From: Trichosphaerium sp. ATCC 40318
Taxonomy: Eukaryota > Protista > Tubulinea
Length of the DNA: 64,000 nt
Direction: 5' to 3'
Assembly (NCBI GenBank): GCA_038496445.1
Contig: JALMLS010000344.1
Location: 1 to 64,000 of the forward strand
Shown here: piece after piece, positions 31,354-42,700 of the stretch
Position numbering within the stretch: the first letter of the stretch is position 1
How the letters are laid out: every line of letters begins with the position of its first letter
The notes under the pieces: model-generated
The model's input: the letters and a program-made list of their open reading frames with translations, nothing else
Database searches by the model: none
Told to the model about the DNA's origin: nothing
Translations under genes and position numbers: made by a program

Positions 31354-34300
31354 ATGGCTACAGACTTGGATAAAGTAGATAAAATCATCAGCCTACAGGG
31401 CCCGCACCTGTCTATAGTTTCACAGAGCTTGACTGAATTTCCGTGCTTCGCGAACAAAACTATTCGTGGGCGATCTGTAACCGATGTAGTTACATCAATA
31501 GACTTGTCTGTAAACAAACTAAGGTATTTAGCAACGCAAATGCTTTTCGTGAACTACAAATATCGATTGAAACACTAACACTACGTTATCAGGGACCTCA
31601 ACCAGTTAGCAGCATTCCCTAACTTGAAGAATTTAATTCTGGACCACAACCTGCTAGAAGCCTCTGATTTTACAGACCTTGAGCCTATTCTCACACTACA
31701 AACGCTATGGATAAATCATAACAACGTATCCTAACCGTAACTGCTTCCTTTAATCTTCACCCAAGTTTCGGCTTTTTAGAAACACAATACTGTGTTAAAG
31801 TATAGGCCTGTCGCCGATGGTGATTTTCCTTAACTAAGCGATAGATCACAAACCTCGTTTTGCTCATGGAGAACTTTAAAACTACGTTCCCTAACCTCAC
31901 CTATCTCAGTATGGTAAACAATCCTTGCACACCCAATACGTTCATTGAAGAGATGAGAGACTCCTATCAAACGTTTAGAACATACGTCATTTCAATGTTA
32001 CCTAAACTACAAACGTTAGACGCCACAGTTGTACGTTTAAATGATTACACAAGCCAATTAATAATTATTGAACGTTTGCTTTTCTAAAAAACGCCAACGG
32101 GTTTCTATTTACATCATTAATCAGGTGAGTGCACAAGAGAGGCATGACGCTGAAGGTGAGGTGGAATTACCACCACCTTCCGGAGCTTACAATATTATTT
32201 CACCTCTAGCAGTACGTTACTTATGTTTTATTTGCTGTAGTATCGTCTAACACTTAGAATAGCGTGCTGATGTTGGTTTTACGTTACATAAACAAGGATC
32301 GCTCATGTTGGTGGAACCTAACGCTAAATCATTGCAGACTTATCGCGATTATTGGCTTGTTTTAGGAGAATGTAAATTGCTTGTATTCCAGAACCCAGAG
32401 CACGCTCAGCCATTGCAAGTAATAAACTTGAACGGTCGTGCAGTTGAAGAAAAGGTTAGAGATGTTGATATACTGACCAAGGTGCGCCAAGGGCTCATTT
32501 TGGCCAAGTTTTAGCTTTTATTTAATTTTTTCTCTTTCTTTCGTACTTATGAGGTTATAGATTGACCCATGTCTTTATACGTTCGCTCTTGAAGACTCTA
32601 CTGAAGGCTTTGCGCCTACAGTATACTTTGCAGCACAAACCCAAGAAGTTATAGAGAGCTGGATGGACGCTATTCAAAAAGAGATTGACGGTCCTGATGC
32701 CCCCGGGAATGGTAAGCCTCCAAAAGTACTTATTGGAAGCACTGGAAATAAGCGTCGTATAAAGCGGGTACGCTCGCAGGAATCAAAGCAACTATTTTAT
32801 GTGAAAATAACTTTTTTGTTGTTTTGTTTTTATCTTCTTTCTGTTAAGCCTCTAATACTTTAAAACTAGCTTTCGAGCCAACTCTCATCATTTTTAATAA
32901 ATCCAGAGGAGATTAAGCTCTCCAGAGGTGCGTTAACGTGCCCTACACGCTTTGCGAAAACTAATTTATTTTCTCTTAAGTTTTGGGTAATGGAGAGTTT
33001 GGAACTGTCTACAAGGGTTATTGTAGGACTAAAACAGTTGCTGTAAAGGTTTTACATAACCAAAACCTTGGAGAGGACGAAATAGATGAATTTCTCAATG
33101 AGATTGAGATTATGAGTAAAGTTCATCATTCTAATGTAGTCATGTTTATGGGTGTTTGCGTAAAAGGTTAGTTTTACAGTCCAGGCTTGGTTTAAAATCC
33201 AGACTTTGAAGTTTTTTTAAGTTTTTTGTTTAAGCTCTTTTGTTTACCGTCTCTATAGGTCCTTTGATGATTATTACAGAACTTATGAAGACAGACCTAT
33301 CAAAACTATTGTTAGATCGTCATTTACCATTACCATTGGCAACACGACTAAAGTACGTGTTACAAAACAAATTCTGACAGACAATCTTTTTTTTTGCTTT
33401 GTTTTGAAAGTGTTTTATTCGTTTTTAAGTACTCACAATGTTTATCTATAGAATGGCTAAAGACTGTGCCATGGGACTTAGCTGGCTTCACGGATGTGAT
33501 CCAATGATTTTACATCGTGATATTGTATGCCACATTTCGTAGATGTGAACTTGTTTAAAGCGTTGTTTTGACTTTGCTTTTGTTTAGAAACCCACTAATT
33601 TTTTGGTTGATGACTCTTATCGAGTCGTTGTATCTGATTTTGGATTTGCAGAGATTTTAGGACGTGGTTCATGGACCACAGATGACAGAGGGAGCTTTAA
33701 AGGCTCTCTTTACTACATGGCACCAGAAATTCTACGAGGAGGCAATTTTAATGAAAAATCTGATGTATACTCCTTTGGTATCGTATTGTGGTGTATTATT
33801 GAACGTGATGAACCTTATGAGGAATTATCATCACTTGATGTACCTCAAGCAATCCGTAAAGTGCGTAGAAATGTCAAACTCTGAAAAACAAAACAACAGT
33901 TTTGGTCATGTGCAGTTTTTGCTTATTTCTTCTTTTTTTTGTAGTTGCTTTGGGAAGAACATAGGCCACAGTTTTCTGCTGATATACCAAAGGAGCTTGA
34001 AGAGCTCACAAAGTCATGCTGGGATGAAGATGCTGAGAAACGTCCTTCTTTTGAAGAACTTGTTAGTAAGATAAAACAAATGATTGTTCATGTAGCTATA
34101 AGAGACAAAGACGCACAGGACTTTTGGCTTGAGGTACACCAACACGAATAAAAAAAAACACAGTTTAAAAACTCTGTCACGTGACACGTGACAGAGGTTG
34201 TGAGGTTGTTTTGTTAACATTTTTTTTAGAATTTTGGAGGAAAACGTAAGGTTGAGTGGAGTACCTTCTGGGAAAAGCTTACAAGCAAACGTGTTCATTT

Positions 34301-36168: not shown

Positions 36169-37384
36169 ATGCGGTTGCGCTCCCCACTGCGAGTTTACTC
36201 GACTGACCACCGTGCCACTGGTAGTCATTTTGTACCAGACATAGAAGAGGTACAATTTTGTTGTGTCAATTTTTAGTAAAACGTCACATGTAAATGTTTA
36301 GTCACGTGTTTTTTTAACTGAATAGTGTTGTTTTACAAGTCACGTGTTTTTTCAACTGAACGTTTTTGTAAAGGAGCTTTTCGAAAACAGCCAAACCGTT
36401 AAATCACGCAGATACTTGAGTGGAACAAAAAAAGGCTTAGATGAAGTCTTTTATGAGAATGGTCAATTGTTTGCTACATGCTACTTTGACGATCAAGGAA
36501 GAGAACAAGGGGACTTCAAGATGTGGCACAAAAATGGTGTTCCGTTTTCAAGAGCATATTTTAAAGACGGGAAGAAACAAGGGGTAGACGAAACTTGGTA
36601 TGAGAGTGGTAAAATACAACAGCAAACTGTATTCAAAGATGACAAGAAAGAAGGCCAACAGAAAGAGTGGCATGATAATGGCCAATTAAGCTCACAATGT
36701 CATTTCAAAGATGATAAGAAAGAAGGCGAACAGAAAGAGTGGTATGAGAATGGCCAAATAAGTTTCCATATCTTTTACAAGCAAGGAAACTGTGAAGGCG
36801 AAGCTAGAACATGGTACGAAAGCGGACAACAAAAGACCCAGTTATTCTACAAAGAAGGACTTGTACTTCAAGGTAAAATGTGGTATGAAAATGGAAATTT
36901 GAGGTATCACCAGCACTACAAGAATAAATTGTGCCATGGTGAAGGAAAAGACTATTATGAGAATGGACAATTGAAAGCGCTAGCTTCCTTCAGAGAAGGA
37001 TTAAAAGAAGGTGAATTCAAGCAGTGGCATGAAAACAGAAGCTTATGTATACATTGCTATTTCAAAGGTGGCTACAAAGATGGTGTATACAAACAATGGC
37101 ATGATAATGGTCAATTCTGGTTACTATGTAGTTTCAAAGATGGCAATAAAGAAGGTGAAGCAAACGAGTGGTACGCAAATGGTCAATTATATTGGAGAAC
37201 ATTCTTCAAAGATGATAAGCAAAATGGGAAAAAAATAAAATGGCATAAAAATGGGCAAATGAAATTGCTTGAGTATTTTAAAGATGGCAAGAAGGTAGGT
37301 GATTCAAAAGAGTGGTATGAAGATGGTCAATTAAAGGAGAAAAGTGCCACTAGAGATGGTGAAGAAAAAGGTTCACAAGATTGA
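36169..37384 (+). CDS. MORN-variant repeat protein (YwqK-like), one 5' intron (36250-36373)
   Basis: About 13 repeats of W(Y/H)ENGQ..(Y/F)KDGKKEG in a single 1-kb exon. A 27-codon first exon from ATG 36169 joins in frame via GTACAA..AAG. Confidence 0.85.
36301..36360. repeat. Two ~22-bp direct repeats GTCACGTGTTTTT(T/C)AACTGAA in the MORN-gene intron
   Basis: Copies at 36301-36322 and 36339-36360. Confidence 0.8.
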
Positions 37385-37571
37385 TAAAACTGATAGTGAA
37401 ATTATGGACCATTTTACACATTAGCTAGCGTTCCTTGTAGATGAACTGAAAAATAAAAAGTACATTTTGGATTACAAAGTCAATGAGAATACTGCAAATA
37501 CACCTTTCAATTGAGACACTCTAGACACCTAGTAAACTACAAAGGAGACCATGTTCTATAATTTTAAATGA

Positions 37572-37740
37572 AATCAAAGTACTGTTTTCACGGTGTGCGC
37601 ACACCATCAAAATTTACAACGAAAAACATGTTTTTTAACAATCAAAAGTGCTATGTTTTCACGGTGTGCACACCTTCCAAAACATAAACATAAACTGAAA
37701 TATAGCGCCTTTTTTTTAGTCATGCGCTGTTGTGCACATT
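37572..37740. repeat. Degenerate ~70-bp-period direct repeats with palindromic cores
   Basis: AATCAAA..TGTTTTCACGGTGTG(CG)CACACC starting at 37572 and 37640. Perfect palindromes GGTGTGCGCACACC (37592-37605) and GGTGTGCACACC (37663-37674); remnant TGTGCACA at 37731-37738. Confidence 0.75.
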
Positions 37741-38107
37741 CTCAATACCTCATTTTTGTCACCTTTTGGCGAATAAAAGCAGTTAATGTTCTCCAATTGA
37801 ATCATCATTAGTTTTTTTCTCAAGAGGCACATGTTAAACAGTTCAATTCATGAACAGCTGCCACCCTCAATGTTAAATTGATCCTTATCAAAAGAACCAA
37901 ACACATAACTATTCCACGTGATCGCTACAAACATAGGCGTTCTTGACATAAATTCATTGCCAAGTAATTCGGCAAGAAACGCTTTAATTAAAGCTGCTCA
38001 GCTCTAAACGACTATGACTATTCTATAAAACAACCTCAGTTTATTTCACATTTCAAAAGACGCCAAATCTTCAGTTTTAGTATGACTGGCCATAGACATT
38101 TTGTGTA

Positions 38108-38794
38108 TTATCTATACTTCTTCCGCTTGTCAGCGGCTGTTTTGTCAAAGTGACAGCTTCTGCAAAGAAATTGAATGTTGTTGCCGAAAAGATCTTCCTG
38201 ATAGTCTTTCATGTGTGGAGAAAGCCACGTCAGTATCTTCTTCAGTCCTGGAGGTGCGGTTTCTTTTTTTCTTAGACAGTAGTATTTAAAAGCCCCTTTT
38301 TGGCCAAGAGTTGCCTTGTAGGTTCCTATAGTTTTAGTATTTGGGTCACGCTTCAGTAATTCTCTAGGTAGGTGAGTTAGGAAAAACAAAGTTGGACTAC
38401 AAGGTCAAGTACCTGAGTCTATCTCCGATTTCCTGATAAATTATTGTTTGAGGCTTCTTATGATCAAACTCGAGTTCCCTAAAGGAACCAAACACAGTAC
38501 CGCACGTGGCGCAAACGGGATTTTCGTTTACACGGTCAGCCATCTCTTTCGCGAAATCACAGTGTTCAGCCTTGTAGTGTATGTGATAGCATGCTTTCTT
38601 GTAGTTATTGAAGCGGGATGCGACTTGTGCTCTCTTTACGTCCAAACGTTTTGGCAACGAGTCGTTTTTAAGTTCCTGTGAGGAGTTACTGTTTAGCGAA
38701 CACGCCGTTTAAATACGTACTTGTAAAAGTTTGAGGCGCTCATCTGATGTAAGGTATCTAAATAGTCTTTAAATTGATCGACAACATGACCCAT
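38108..38794 (-). CDS. Zn-binding HNH endonuclease-family protein (5' structure unresolved)
   Basis: CATCG..ELEFDHKKP followed, after a ~70-aa insert and an in-frame GTACTT..CTAAC..TAG intron, by NNIQFLCRSCHFDKT. This is the CxxC..DH..N..CxxCH..KT HNH signature. Confidence 0.78.
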
Positions 38795-39150
38795 TGTGTC
38801 TACAGACACAGTTTGTATGTATTTTAAACACTAGTTTTTTCTTACACGTCATAGTAAAATCACATTTCTGACATACTACCACTTTCCTTTTTTTGACTGA
38901 TGTCGGGTTCTTGACCCGAGCGAAGTGACAGACATGCGAAAGAGACCACTGCGCTCTAATTGTTTGTACTTGCTGTCCCACTCCCGGATCTTTTCGGCAG
39001 ATGCGAACAAACCCGAACAATTACCGGCGGAAGACCTGTTGGGAAAGTAATAAAAAACGCTTACAGGTTGTAGCTGGAGAGCATTTTATTTCGTCACGTG
39101 ATACATTACACATGACGTGACATTACAACGGTTCGTCGTTCGCAGTTTTG

Positions 39151-39400
39151 AAGTGGTACTACCTCAATGCAGCAGAGCACTCTAATCCTAAGCTTAAACC
39201 GCTTGCCTCATCTTGGCAGCAAGCACTAAAAATAAAGTACGTGTCCTCTATCACAAAGAGAGATGACCTTGGTTTTGGATAAAAAAGATTCTTCGAATTT
39301 TTATGTTTGTTGCGTGGTGACAGCTGCCAAGATGAGGCAAGCGGTTTTCTGTTGTATGATTAGGGATACTCCGCTGCATTGGTGTAGTTGTAGTACTTTT
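39151..39400. repeat. Long inverted repeat (~70-bp arms, perfect 25-bp core)
   Basis: AAACCGCTTGCCTCATCTTGGCAGC (39196-39220) is the exact reverse complement of 39323-39347. Imperfect pairing extends outward (CAATGCAGC/GCTGCATTG, CTAATC/GATTAG). Confidence 0.93.
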
Positions 39401-39738
39401 ACATATTTTTTTTGTTGATTTTAAAACCTTACAATATGCTGTTTCTATTTGTAATATTAGAATGCCAAACGTAATGGATGGACCACGAACTACTTCTGAA
39501 CGAACTCGAACAATACTATTTACGAATTATTTTCAGAAAAGTACTGCAAAGACGCTACACTCCCAAAAGGTTATTAACTTGTAAATGGTGACTTGTAAGC
39601 TGTAGCTACAACCAACTTGAATAAAATACTTTTTGTGTAGAATTTTTATTGTTTATATTAAAGTACAAGTGAAGTGAGTAAGGGTGATTGTAGAATCACT
39701 TTTGTGAGTAGCTTTTAAAAGCGTATTATTATGGTTTC

Positions 39739-42700
39739 TTAGTCTGTGATATTCATTTTTCTTGATGGAGCGTTGGTTCGACTCATAGGTCGTATTGGGC
39801 TCTCTACTGTGTCCATGTTACGTATAGGCTTTTCTTTACCATCGAAGCCCTCTTTAGGCCCTTGGCTACCTCCTCGAGGACCAGGGGTAACACTCTCCAC
39901 TAAGCTAGCAGGGATTGTACGAAGAGTTGGCAAAGTACCTTCAAACTTTGGCTCCTTTGGATCTTCGTTAACATAAACCTTTTTCGTTGCTCTTATTGGT
40001 ACTGTTGAAGCTGCTCTACGAGGTTTCTGCATGGCTAAACAACGACATTAATTTAATAAACAAAGAGAGACAGAAGAGCAAAGAATTGAGCTTAAAACAA
40101 AAAACAAAACCCAGAATAAGTGTTGTTTACCTTTTTGTTTTGCGCTTTTTTGACGTTGAGGATTTTGAGATTGTTTAACTGGTGTAGCACTTGATGGAAG
40201 TGAAAGAAGGTTTGGATCAATAGAAACTAAACATAGGGTAAGAGCCAAAGTACTTTGGAACAACAGAATAAAAAAAAGAAAAAAAAGTTCAGAGTAGCGG
40301 CTGCTTCTCTAGTGTCCAACTTTCAGATGCTTGTCGTGATGCAAGCACCCGCTAGTGTCAAATGATTTCGAGAAAAATAAATAAAAGACGTACTACTTTG
40401 ATTAGGTGGTAAGAAATTATTCAATCGTCCTACAATATGTGCATTATACTCTACCAAAGCTTTGAATTTTTTTCTCATTTCTCGATTTTCATCTTGCCTA
40501 AAAAAGGTCACGTGAGAATCAAGGTTTGTTTGGGTATCTATAGTATAGTATACTAGTAATACGTACAACTCATCTACATCAGTATCATAGATATAGTCAG
40601 GTCCATATGACAACTCTTTGATAACTGTATCAAGACGATTTCGTGTTTCTTCTGTAAGAATCCTTTTGTTTGCACTTTGCTTTTGATCTTTAAGCTTCTG
40701 TACATATGCCTTATACTGTTTAAGATGCTCTTGTTGCTTCTTTACATAAACATCAAACTGTTGCAACTTATCACGCTGTGTATGAATAAAAGCATTAAGT
40801 TGTGTGCACTTTTCGGTGACTTTTACAGTTTGATCTCTCAAAGCGCTGTTTTCTATGTTTAATGCTTGTATGTCTTGCTCTGCGCGTTGATGACGAACAG
40901 CAAGGTCGTATTTGATATTTTCAAGTTCATCAATACGTTCTAGCAACTGAATATTCTGATTTCTTAGAGCTTGCATATCTCCTGTCAATATCTTGTTTTT
41001 TGTTTCTAACTCGGCGTTTTGTCTGGCTAGGTTCTGCTTTTCATTTGGAGGTGATTCATTCAACTGCTCATCTAACATACGAACAACTGTCTCACCGAAA
41101 GCTTTACGCTCGGACAACGGCGTAATATTACCATTACGGTTCTAGAGAAACAAGTTAATTCACTTCCCAGTAACAAAGAGAAAAGTTCGAAGGATAAGCT
41201 TACGCTACTGCCTTGGTACCCAGCGTCAAATTTAAGTGTTCGTGATTGCTACAGTATGCACGTTAGTATATATTTGGCATTCATAAGTACAAAAATAAAA
41301 GAAGATTCACGTGTTTGTACTCACCTTTACTTTTTTCTCTGATTCTATCTCTATGTGTAAGTCTGATGCTGAACCTGATCTTGCAGGTAGATTGCCAAAA
41401 GTCTTTGTTTGTCTTATCTTCATAGTAGCAGCGCCTCTATTAGGTTCAATACCAGCTTTACTACCAAAAGCGGCTGGAGGACTCTTTGATCGTGCAGGCA
41501 ACGTGGCTGTAAGGTCACCTGCAAAAGGGGAAGCAGACGTTGAAGATGCTGAGCGTGGTAACGGAACCTTAGGGCCTATAACAGGTTAGAACCAACAACC
41601 GTATAATAGAATAATTAGTACGTGGTCTACGATTTGCACCTCCAGTTGCGGCAGCTAAATTTTTGAGTTAACAACGATACAAATTAATCAAAAAACTATA
41701 GTACAAGGTGATCCACTGCGAGCTAGACTTGATACAAATGTTGGAGAAGTAACCCGTTTAGGTAATTCTGGAGGTGGTGATGTACTAGGAGGTCTTGTAT
41801 CGCGAACAGGCATAGTACTAGCCCTTGTCATATCCTTAATAGACCATCAATAAAGAAAAAAAAATTCTGTCTAAAAATATACCATTGTTAGTGGCATGCG
41901 GATTACGCTTGAACTAGGAGCTGTAATTCTATGTGGAACTTGAATATTATTATTCCCAGCATTAGCTAGGAACGATTGTGATCTCCCAGTACGAGGTGAG
42001 GTAGCTTGAGCCTGCTGTCGGCCTATCTTGCCTGAAAAGAAATGTTTGTTTTGGTAATGCTTAGTAAGTAAACTGATTACCTTGAATAAACTGGCAGATT
42101 TTCTCGTTGTTCACAGATTGTGCAACGGCCATACAAGTACCAGAGTCGCCAGGATGCATCAATAAAGCTATACGGTTTTTCTTACCAGCTATATTCTTAC
42201 AGAGTAGTTTAAACACCTCTAATCTGTCTAATGGAGACCTAGCACAAAAATGCAGCGGTGTTTCACCACGACTAGAGTTTCCAAATAAGTCACAGTATCA
42301 GCAAGCACGACTTACCGTGTCTTTTTATCGATGATTGCACCGTTCTTTAATAATGTGTTTACAATAGACTTTGAAGATCTGAATGCAGCACGGTGGAGTG
42401 GAGACTCAGCTTTTTTATTACACCTATTGACATCCACACCTTTTAAATAAAGTGAGTACAAAACAAAAAAGTAAAAACGTGCTAACCTTTATCAAGTAGA
42501 GTAACTAGTAGTTTTTCTATACGTGCGGCATCCTTACTATCCTTTGGTCGATACTGTATGAGGTAATGCAGTATAGAGTTTTCTTTCTCTTTTGACACTA
42601 CATGAGGACTAACTTTAGGATGACGCAACAATAGATGTGCTGCATCAATCTGACCTGTGTAAAAAAGAAGTTAAGTCACTTTCAAAAAGGAGAAACAAAT

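Follow-up and report, generated by a model that had tools for sequence, protein, structure and literature searches.

In the amoeba Trichosphaerium sp. ATCC 40318, a small gene for an HNH protein lies beside a long inverted repeat able to form an RNA hairpin; both are contained in a stretch of 64,000 nucleotides (positions 1 to 64,000 of contig JALMLS010000344.1, assembly GCA_038496445.1), which was analysed as a whole and is called here the window. A sequence-only reading had placed hairpin and gene on the same strand and proposed that they might form a unit of nuclease and structured RNA similar to the IscB/IshB loci, or else a mobile element, while allowing that their adjacency might be coincidental. 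The locus thus poses the question of whether the two elements belong together, and of where an intron-bearing HNH gene of an amoeba comes from. The analysis indicates that the locus is probably made up of two separate, divergent transcription units, namely a spliced HNH gene derived from phages and a hairpin RNA, and not of an HNH-plus-RNA module.

The window has a G+C content of 37% and short introns, in agreement with a eukaryotic setting. Four public runs (X1, X2, X3 and X4) contain the locus, and their contigs were compared with the window; the runs represent complementary DNA (cDNA), because the loose contig ends carry the SMART template-switch sequence ...GTATCAACGCAGAGTACGGGG. Contigs of the HNH gene were found in X1-X4 and those of the hairpin in X1. 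The 49-nt HNH intron, which ends with CT..AC on the plus strand and hence with GT..AG on the minus strand, is skipped exactly in contigs of X1, X3 and X4, while one X2 contig retains it; its removal joins the two open reading frames (ORFs) of the gene in frame, through a split Arg codon. At its upstream end, a 599-nt X1 contig stops at 38690 and continues directly into the reverse complement of the template-switch oligonucleotide; since the oligonucleotide abuts the contig at this position, 38690 on the minus strand is the 5′ end of the HNH mRNA. The start coincides with a C|A dinucleotide that resembles an initiator, and the T at 38715 of a TATA-like box, GTATTTAAAC, is located 25 nt upstream of it; this box may act as a promoter element of the gene. 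Together with a poly(A) signal, these features bear out the earlier expectation of a eukaryotic, intron-containing HNH gene.

The first in-frame ATG of the mRNA is at 38543, in a good context (G at both -3 and +4), and opens a coding sequence (38543-38413 joined to 38363-38108) of 128 codons for a basic protein of 128 aa, whose exon-encoded pieces are 43 and 84 aa long. An additional first exon starting from ATG 38794 was considered and rejected: this ATG lies outside the HNH transcript, a splice to 38675 would break the frame, and the acceptor that preserves it needs an intron of 32 nt. Such an exon is also unnecessary, because the cDNA 5′ end sits just below the TATA-like box. Upstream of the initiation codon, the HNH frame is open without an in-frame ATG from 38708 to 38544 (minus strand), that is for 55 codons, 49 of them within the 5′ untranslated region (UTR). 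This stretch encodes a C-Y-H-I-H...H-C pattern resembling the N-terminal zinc-ribbon region of phage HNH enzymes, and a PHROG HNH family aligned weakly to it (E 0.034).

The inverted repeat with a perfect 25-bp core, described from the sequence upstream of the gene, is indeed present. Its arms of about 66 nt have 80% identity and the whole element measures about 245 bp, with a stem of about 70 bp; the predicted folding energy is -106.6 kcal/mol (z -7.3) on the plus strand and -102.4 kcal/mol (z -10) on the minus strand, and no shuffled sequence was as stable. The strand of the RNA is, however, opposite to that assumed in the sequence-only reading. Indeed, one X1 contig (record 4) starts with the template-switch oligonucleotide, followed by position 39059 on the plus strand, and runs into the left arm up to 39187; a second one (record 5) covers 39291-39506, including the right arm. 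These contigs, seen only in X1, cover both flanks and the outer stem. The plus strand of the transcript contains only short ORFs, and its end may be indicated by an AATAAA on that strand at 39620-39625; the hairpin RNA is thus probably a polyadenylated, non-coding transcript of the plus strand. A distance of 369 bp separates its 5′ end from that of the HNH mRNA, and the two transcripts diverge.

Two forms of a functional association were weighed against this arrangement. That the hairpin RNA works together with the HNH protein, guiding or regulating it as a nuclease in analogy to IshB and its omega-RNA, is hardly credible, and only marginally less so is a eukaryotic RNA-nuclease pair, in which the protein would for instance bind or process the hairpin, or follow its small RNAs. 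The likeness to the IscB/IshB OMEGA systems consists of a small HNH-bearing protein beside a structured RNA locus; the short distance between the 5′ ends speaks for a pair, and so does the restriction of the hairpin contigs to X1, where the HNH contig is deepest. IscB family proteins, however, ride on IS200/605 transposons together with omega-RNA, and IshB averages about 180 aa (PMC11610941). The amoeba protein has only 128 aa and lacks PLMP, RuvC and a bridge helix; as already noted from the sequence, neither PLMP nor RuvC appeared, either among the Pfam and NCBIfam matches or, for the PLMP motif, in the exon translations. An Rfam scan of 37500-40500 (E <= 1) gave no HEARO or omega-RNA, its sole match being a weak, generic MIR6224 hairpin (31.6 bits versus a gathering threshold of 171). 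The HNH lineage is of the phage packaging type and not of the IscB type, the RNA is transcribed from the other strand, in the direction that leads away from the gene, and its simple, long perfect stem resembles a Dicer-type substrate rather than a scaffold fold. No sequence match or complementarity was found between hairpin and HNH mRNA, nor any target of the hairpin in the window.

The proposal of a mobile element fares no better. A repeat scan of 33-44 kb revealed no terminal or flanking repeats around the HNH gene, although no search was aimed at TnpA, and neither transposon ends in this interval nor a further copy in the window came to light. Adjacency is therefore the sole tie between gene and hairpin, coincidence is the better reading of it, as the sequence-only reading had itself allowed, and the two units would be independent of each other.

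The HNH motifs reported from the sequence (CxxC, EFDH and NIQFLCRSCH..KT on the minus strand) were recovered in two halves, one for each exon. The regular expressions for the N-half and for the C-half, the latter matching the 14 residues NNIQFLCRSCHFDK, each have a single match when the window is translated in all six frames, and none in 50 shuffles. The C-terminal half, NNIQFLCRSCHFDKT, presents the Asn followed by C-x2-C-H on a helix and corresponds to positions 30-45 of Pfam HNH (PF01844), which the 3′ exon matches with 17.1 bits, below the gathering threshold of 21.4; in a family scan of the 5′ exon alone no Pfam HNH match was obtained. The 3′ exon also matches PHROG HNH families (best E 3e-4). 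It retains three in-register Cys (K-Y-Y-C ... C-R-S-C), while the complete C-A-T-C, a CxxC of the Zn-knuckle kind, is found in the 5′ exon. NCBIfam and PADLOC scans gave no matches, a single-protein scan of the 3′ exon against viral contigs gave no relative, and 5′-exon matches in the PDB to TPR proteins (LGN/Pins) were discarded as repeat-driven noise. Word-index protein searches with both exon ORFs, in a length window that would admit proteins of 128 aa, found no relatives, and the six matches at E <= 1e-3 given by phmmer against 1.84 billion protein representatives were all repetitive proteins aligned over short stretches. At the sequence level, the HNH protein is thus an orphan.

Profile and structure-based comparisons identify phages as the source of its closest kin. 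The structure of the HNH protein of phage GVE2 (PDB 5h0m) aligns with the 3′ exon over residues 17-81 (E 2e-5), and the ten best Atlas neighbours, obtained with language-model features, all belong to the HNH family (score 0.92). In tblastn searches against GenBank phages the 3′ exon gave weak matches, most of those listed falling under annotated HNH endonuclease or HNHc genes and several under no annotation or under 'holin', while the 5′ exon gave one chance match only. Two phage profiles were then used for alignment, one from four GenBank phages (A2) and one from 46 IMG/VR loci (A4); in the latter the columns C, C, V-D-H, N, Q, L-C, H and K are invariant, and D86 and H87 are conserved in 46 out of 46 sequences. 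hhalign aligned residues 26-81 of the 3′ exon to A2 with E 2.2e-7, so that K26 occupies the column of the first Cys and T45-W46 those of D-H, and residues 42-79 to A4 with E 7.6e-7, pairing KILTWLSPH with TvVDHI.PH.

On these alignments, the closest kin of the amoeba protein are the phage terminase-side HNH endonucleases of the PDB 5H0M and HK97 gp74 type, a group described by Xu and Gupta as 'Group 3' HNH endonucleases (HNHE), in which the first His is the general base (PMC3592412). These terminase-associated nicking enzymes, such as HK97 gp74 and the Geobacillus virus E2 HNH, have a similar size (about 110-130 aa) and a common core, C-x2-C ... V-D-H-I-x-P-H-x-G-D-x2-L-F ... N-x-Q-x-L-C-x-x-C-H-x2-K-T. 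Unlike them, the amoeba gene is nuclear and spliced, and it is devoid of cos or terminase neighbours and of a tailed-phage context, being flanked by a MORN-repeat gene and a coiled-coil gene. Moreover, its N-half and the remaining core are 62 residues apart, the in-register D-H is replaced by T-W and the first Cys by K; identity is about 25-30%, and no match survives at full protein-library scale. Most likely, the gene would have been acquired long ago from a bacterium or a phage and then domesticated.

The most unusual feature of the protein is the separation of its motif halves. The sequence-only reading had described an insertion of about 70 aa splitting the motif. A long stretch between D-H and Asn does exist, with 77 residues instead of the usual 16 or so; it is, however, not simply an insertion, as its C-terminal part continues the phage core in register, from the PH turn to KT, with T-W in place of D-H and K in place of the first Cys. 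The T-W dipeptide sits four residues before the inner P. In the 5′ exon, in turn, NPVCATC, 12 residues and DHKKP are in register with hPLCxEC...VDHIxP of the phage family (hhalign P 0.028 with A2 and 0.0087 with A4), and this N-half obtains an hmmsearch score of 7.6 bits, which none of 1000 shuffles reached. The C-half alone scores 21.5 bits, and its extension back to P49 raises the score to 24.2 bits, P-H..D..LF adding about 3 bits; the real score was reached by 17 of 1000 shuffles of residues 26-59 and by 45 of 1000 of residues 47-59. Since the bits rise and shuffles of the extension seldom match them, collinearity extends, with modest support, at least to P49-H50. The P column of the family is present twice, and both P are followed by x4-YQE, a motif foreign to the family.

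The simplest origin suggested by this anatomy is a partial duplication in tandem of the N-half, in which the outer copy would have kept C-x2-C and D-H, while the inner copy lost both. Somewhat unlikely, but the most serious contender, is a true inserted subdomain between D-H and Asn, in an active single-site HNH nuclease whose first beta-strand comes from the 5′ exon. Such an insertion agrees with the complete residue set (CxxC, D-H, N and CxxCH) being obtained only when both exon halves are combined, and with the inner T-W segment not being significantly HNH-like when taken alone. It accounts poorly for the ungapped, in-register P-H..D..LF with T-W exactly on the D-H columns, for the twofold occurrence of P-x4-YQE, and for the predicted structure of the 3′ exon alone, which forms a strand-strand-helix arrangement with KILTW as the first strand. 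A tandem array of whole domains is not claimed, because the pairing of N-half with N-half between the exons was not significant in a Smith-Waterman test for internal repeats; in its best local alignment (p 0.02), the C-half of the 3′ exon was matched to the portion of the 5′ exon that lies upstream of the coding sequence and is not translated. Repetition or swapping of parts within or between chains is otherwise known among nucleases, as in single-chain LAGLIDADG enzymes and in the domain-swapped dimer of T4 endonuclease VII. Compared to internally duplicated or pseudo-dimeric nucleases, whose halves need not stay equivalent, here only a half-domain would appear to be duplicated. After such a partial duplication with complementary decay, a single active site may be assembled from the outer N-half and the inner C-half.

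An indication that the protein is under constraint comes from a second expressed version of the gene. Relative to the window, the 3′-exon part of the X1 contig carries 11 coding differences, whereas its 5′-exon part is identical; seven changes are synonymous and four non-synonymous, of which two together produce T14R, one produces T45M and one brings the stop forward by one codon. The D-column position is thus T in one version and M in the other, while the W and all motif residues are kept. The second version represents either another haplotype or a closely related paralogue. The ratio of non-synonymous to synonymous polymorphism (pN/pS) between the two is 0.15 (Fisher p 0.002); the HNH protein is under purifying selection, and therefore does something. 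Over its whole extent (38049-38690) the X1 contig has no differences in the 278 nt of the 5′ exon, versus 18 plus a 7-nt deletion in the 3′ exon and 3′ UTR; the break of identity at the intron could reflect a haplotype boundary, gene conversion or a chimeric contig of two copies.

Most likely, the protein binds DNA, and it may or may not have kept some nicking activity; nicking would require the D-H strand of the 5′ exon to be packed against the helix of the 3′ exon. That the gene is instead the decaying relic of a selfish or homing endonuclease, transcribed without function, is improbable. Its orphan status, with no orthologue detected in the searches, the loss of the in-register general base and of one Zn ligand, the uORF (upstream ORF) before the start and the open, apparently once-coding frame now in the 5′ UTR would all fit decay. 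Conversely, the low pN/pS between the two expressed haplotypes, a reading frame intact across a correctly spliced intron, the good context of the main ATG and the integrity of all the remaining motif residues argue for a maintained gene.

Other observations weigh against the picture of a phage-derived, rearranged HNH gene diverging from a hairpin RNA. Above ATG 38543 the frame stays open for 49 codons of the transcript, and for 55 back to the stop codon at 38711-38709 (P 0.027 for 55), so the N-terminus could be longer, either formerly or through a non-AUG or unseen upstream start. Structural neighbours of the model are nearly all HNH nucleases, but the matches are weak (Foldseek E > 1, VIA Z <= 3.9). 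The AlphaFold2 (AF2) model of the 3′ exon itself, built with the phage alignment, shows strands at residues 42-46 and 63-67 and a helix at 68-82, with a mediocre predicted local distance difference test (pLDDT) value of 68, which falls to a useless 40 when the alignment is omitted; because it was built from an HNH alignment, this model is no independent evidence. In hmmsearch, the score of residues 1-58 of the 3′ exon does not exceed that of shuffles, and since this part alone is not HNH-like, a plain insertion keeps a share of the probability, as graded above. Finally, the plus-strand orientation of the hairpin RNA comes from one contig of one run, with a depth of 8.5, and the contigs stop short of the stem core and loop (39188-39290).

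The hairpin, considered as a unit of its own, is most likely a small-RNA precursor, that is a predicted Dicer substrate of the hairpin-RNA or miRNA-like kind. MicroRNAs (miRNAs) that satisfy strict criteria were reported from every amoebozoan examined, with a rapid turnover (Edelbroek et al. 2024, PMC11014262); a species-specific small-RNA precursor fits here, because amoebozoan miRNAs are both widespread and short-lived in evolution. As in the amoebozoan miRNA and hairpin-RNA precursors of that study, the element is an intergenic, independently transcribed long stem-loop, and its perfect 25-bp duplex has about the size of a small-RNA duplex. It differs from a typical miRNA precursor in the greater size of its stem, of about 70 bp, and of its 102-nt loop, and it is known from cDNA contigs and its predicted fold, with no target in the window. 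Rather unlikely, though less so than decay of the HNH gene, is a foldback element, a miniature inverted-repeat transposable element (MITE) or a relic between two genes, passively transcribed and without RNA function. An intergenic inverted repeat of this length, with arms of about 66 nt and a non-coding spacer, would have the appearance of such an element; however, the 64-kb window contains no second copy, full or partial, and no target-site duplication was found at the arm ends. Unlike the termini of MITEs, which would be expected to be best kept, the best-conserved part is the innermost 25 bp, a perfect run with p about 0.012 if the 13 mismatched columns were evenly spread, and the 5′ end of the RNA precedes the element by 90 nt. 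Metagenome contigs contained no exact match to the 25-nt core. The coordinates of both transcription units are collected in Table 1.

Table 1. Coordinates, in the window, of the features of the HNH gene and of the hairpin transcription unit.
Feature	Position	Strand	Basis
5′ exon of HNH mRNA	38413..38690	-	X1 cDNA contig record 3; adapter at 38690
5′ UTR of HNH mRNA	38690-38544	-	mapped 5′ end to ATG 38543
8-codon uORF in HNH 5′ UTR	38592-38566	-	ATG context analysis
GTATTTAAAC TATA-like box	38707..38716	-	read from sequence; mapped 5′ end
49-nt GT-AG intron, phase 2	38364..38412	-	skipped exactly by cDNA contigs
3′ exon of HNH mRNA	38040..38363	-	cDNA contigs reach down to 38049
3′ exon, coding part	38363-38111	-	sequence
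3′ exon, stop codon	38110-38108	-	sequence
3′ exon, AATAAA in 3′ UTR	38045-38040	-	sequence; poly(A) end judged from the signal
Intact HNH N-half: C-x2-C, 12 residues, D-H, 2 residues, P (CATCG...ELEFDHKKP)	38451..38513	-	regular expression, hhalign, hmmsearch
HNH core, P-H turn to N-x4-C-x2-C-H-x2-K	38141..38218	-	Pfam, PHROG, PDB, hhalign
14-aa C-half match NNIQFLCRSCHFDK	38182-38141	-	regular expression; T of K-T follows at 38140-38138
T-W dipeptide in D-H columns of phage HNH family	38225..38230	-	profile alignments; M-W in second haplotype
Left arm of inverted repeat	39150..39220		perfect core 39196-39220
102-nt spacer (loop) of inverted repeat	39221..39322		arms and fold
Right arm of inverted repeat	39323..39395		perfect core 39323-39347
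Hairpin transcript, probably non-coding	39059..39506	+	X1 records 4 and 5; extent and joining of contigs presumed

The surroundings of the two units present some further elements. On one side, the plus strand carries at 36344-37384 a long ORF without introns, which encodes MORN_2 repeats (Pfam E 2e-41) and whose DNA repeats with a period of 72 nt; its cDNA contigs match only partly and show many loose ends and odd joints, pointing to the expression of several diverged paralogues. On the other side, an apparent coiled-coil protein gene occupies 39739-41117 of the minus strand, with an ORF of 264 aa and a terminal ORF of 97 aa that ends at 39739; given its AATAAA at 39650-39645, its 3′ end would converge on, and perhaps overlap, that of the hairpin RNA. 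Palindromes of the GTCACGTG type are found in two places: at 39093-39122, just inside the plus-strand hairpin transcript, as the inverted pair GTCACGTGAT...ATGACGTGAC, and at 36300-36369, upstream of the MORN gene, as a direct repeat AGTCACGTGTTTTTT(T/C)AACTGAA spaced by 38 nt; they may represent a shared E-box-like regulatory element. Downstream of the HNH 3′ end, at 37583-37681, TGTTTTCACGGTGTGC(G/A)CAC occurs twice, 71 nt apart, each time with a palindrome of the GTGTGCGCACAC type. A second, weaker inverted repeat, with 32-nt arms that are 75% complementary and 244 nt apart, is located at 33835-34142.

The locus does not lead towards a eukaryotic nuclease guided by RNA. Its hairpin would add a further candidate to the fast-turning-over small-RNA loci of Amoebozoa. 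If the anatomy proposed for the HNH gene holds, the amoeba possesses a domesticated, intron-bearing descendant of a phage packaging-type HNH nuclease, whose relatives were not found among 1.84 billion protein representatives. With 62 residues between the pieces of its catalytic motif, and Trp in place of the in-register general base, such a protein would be a natural test of how far the beta-beta-alpha-metal fold tolerates rearrangement, and the gene would represent a further case of gene capture by a protist from a phage.

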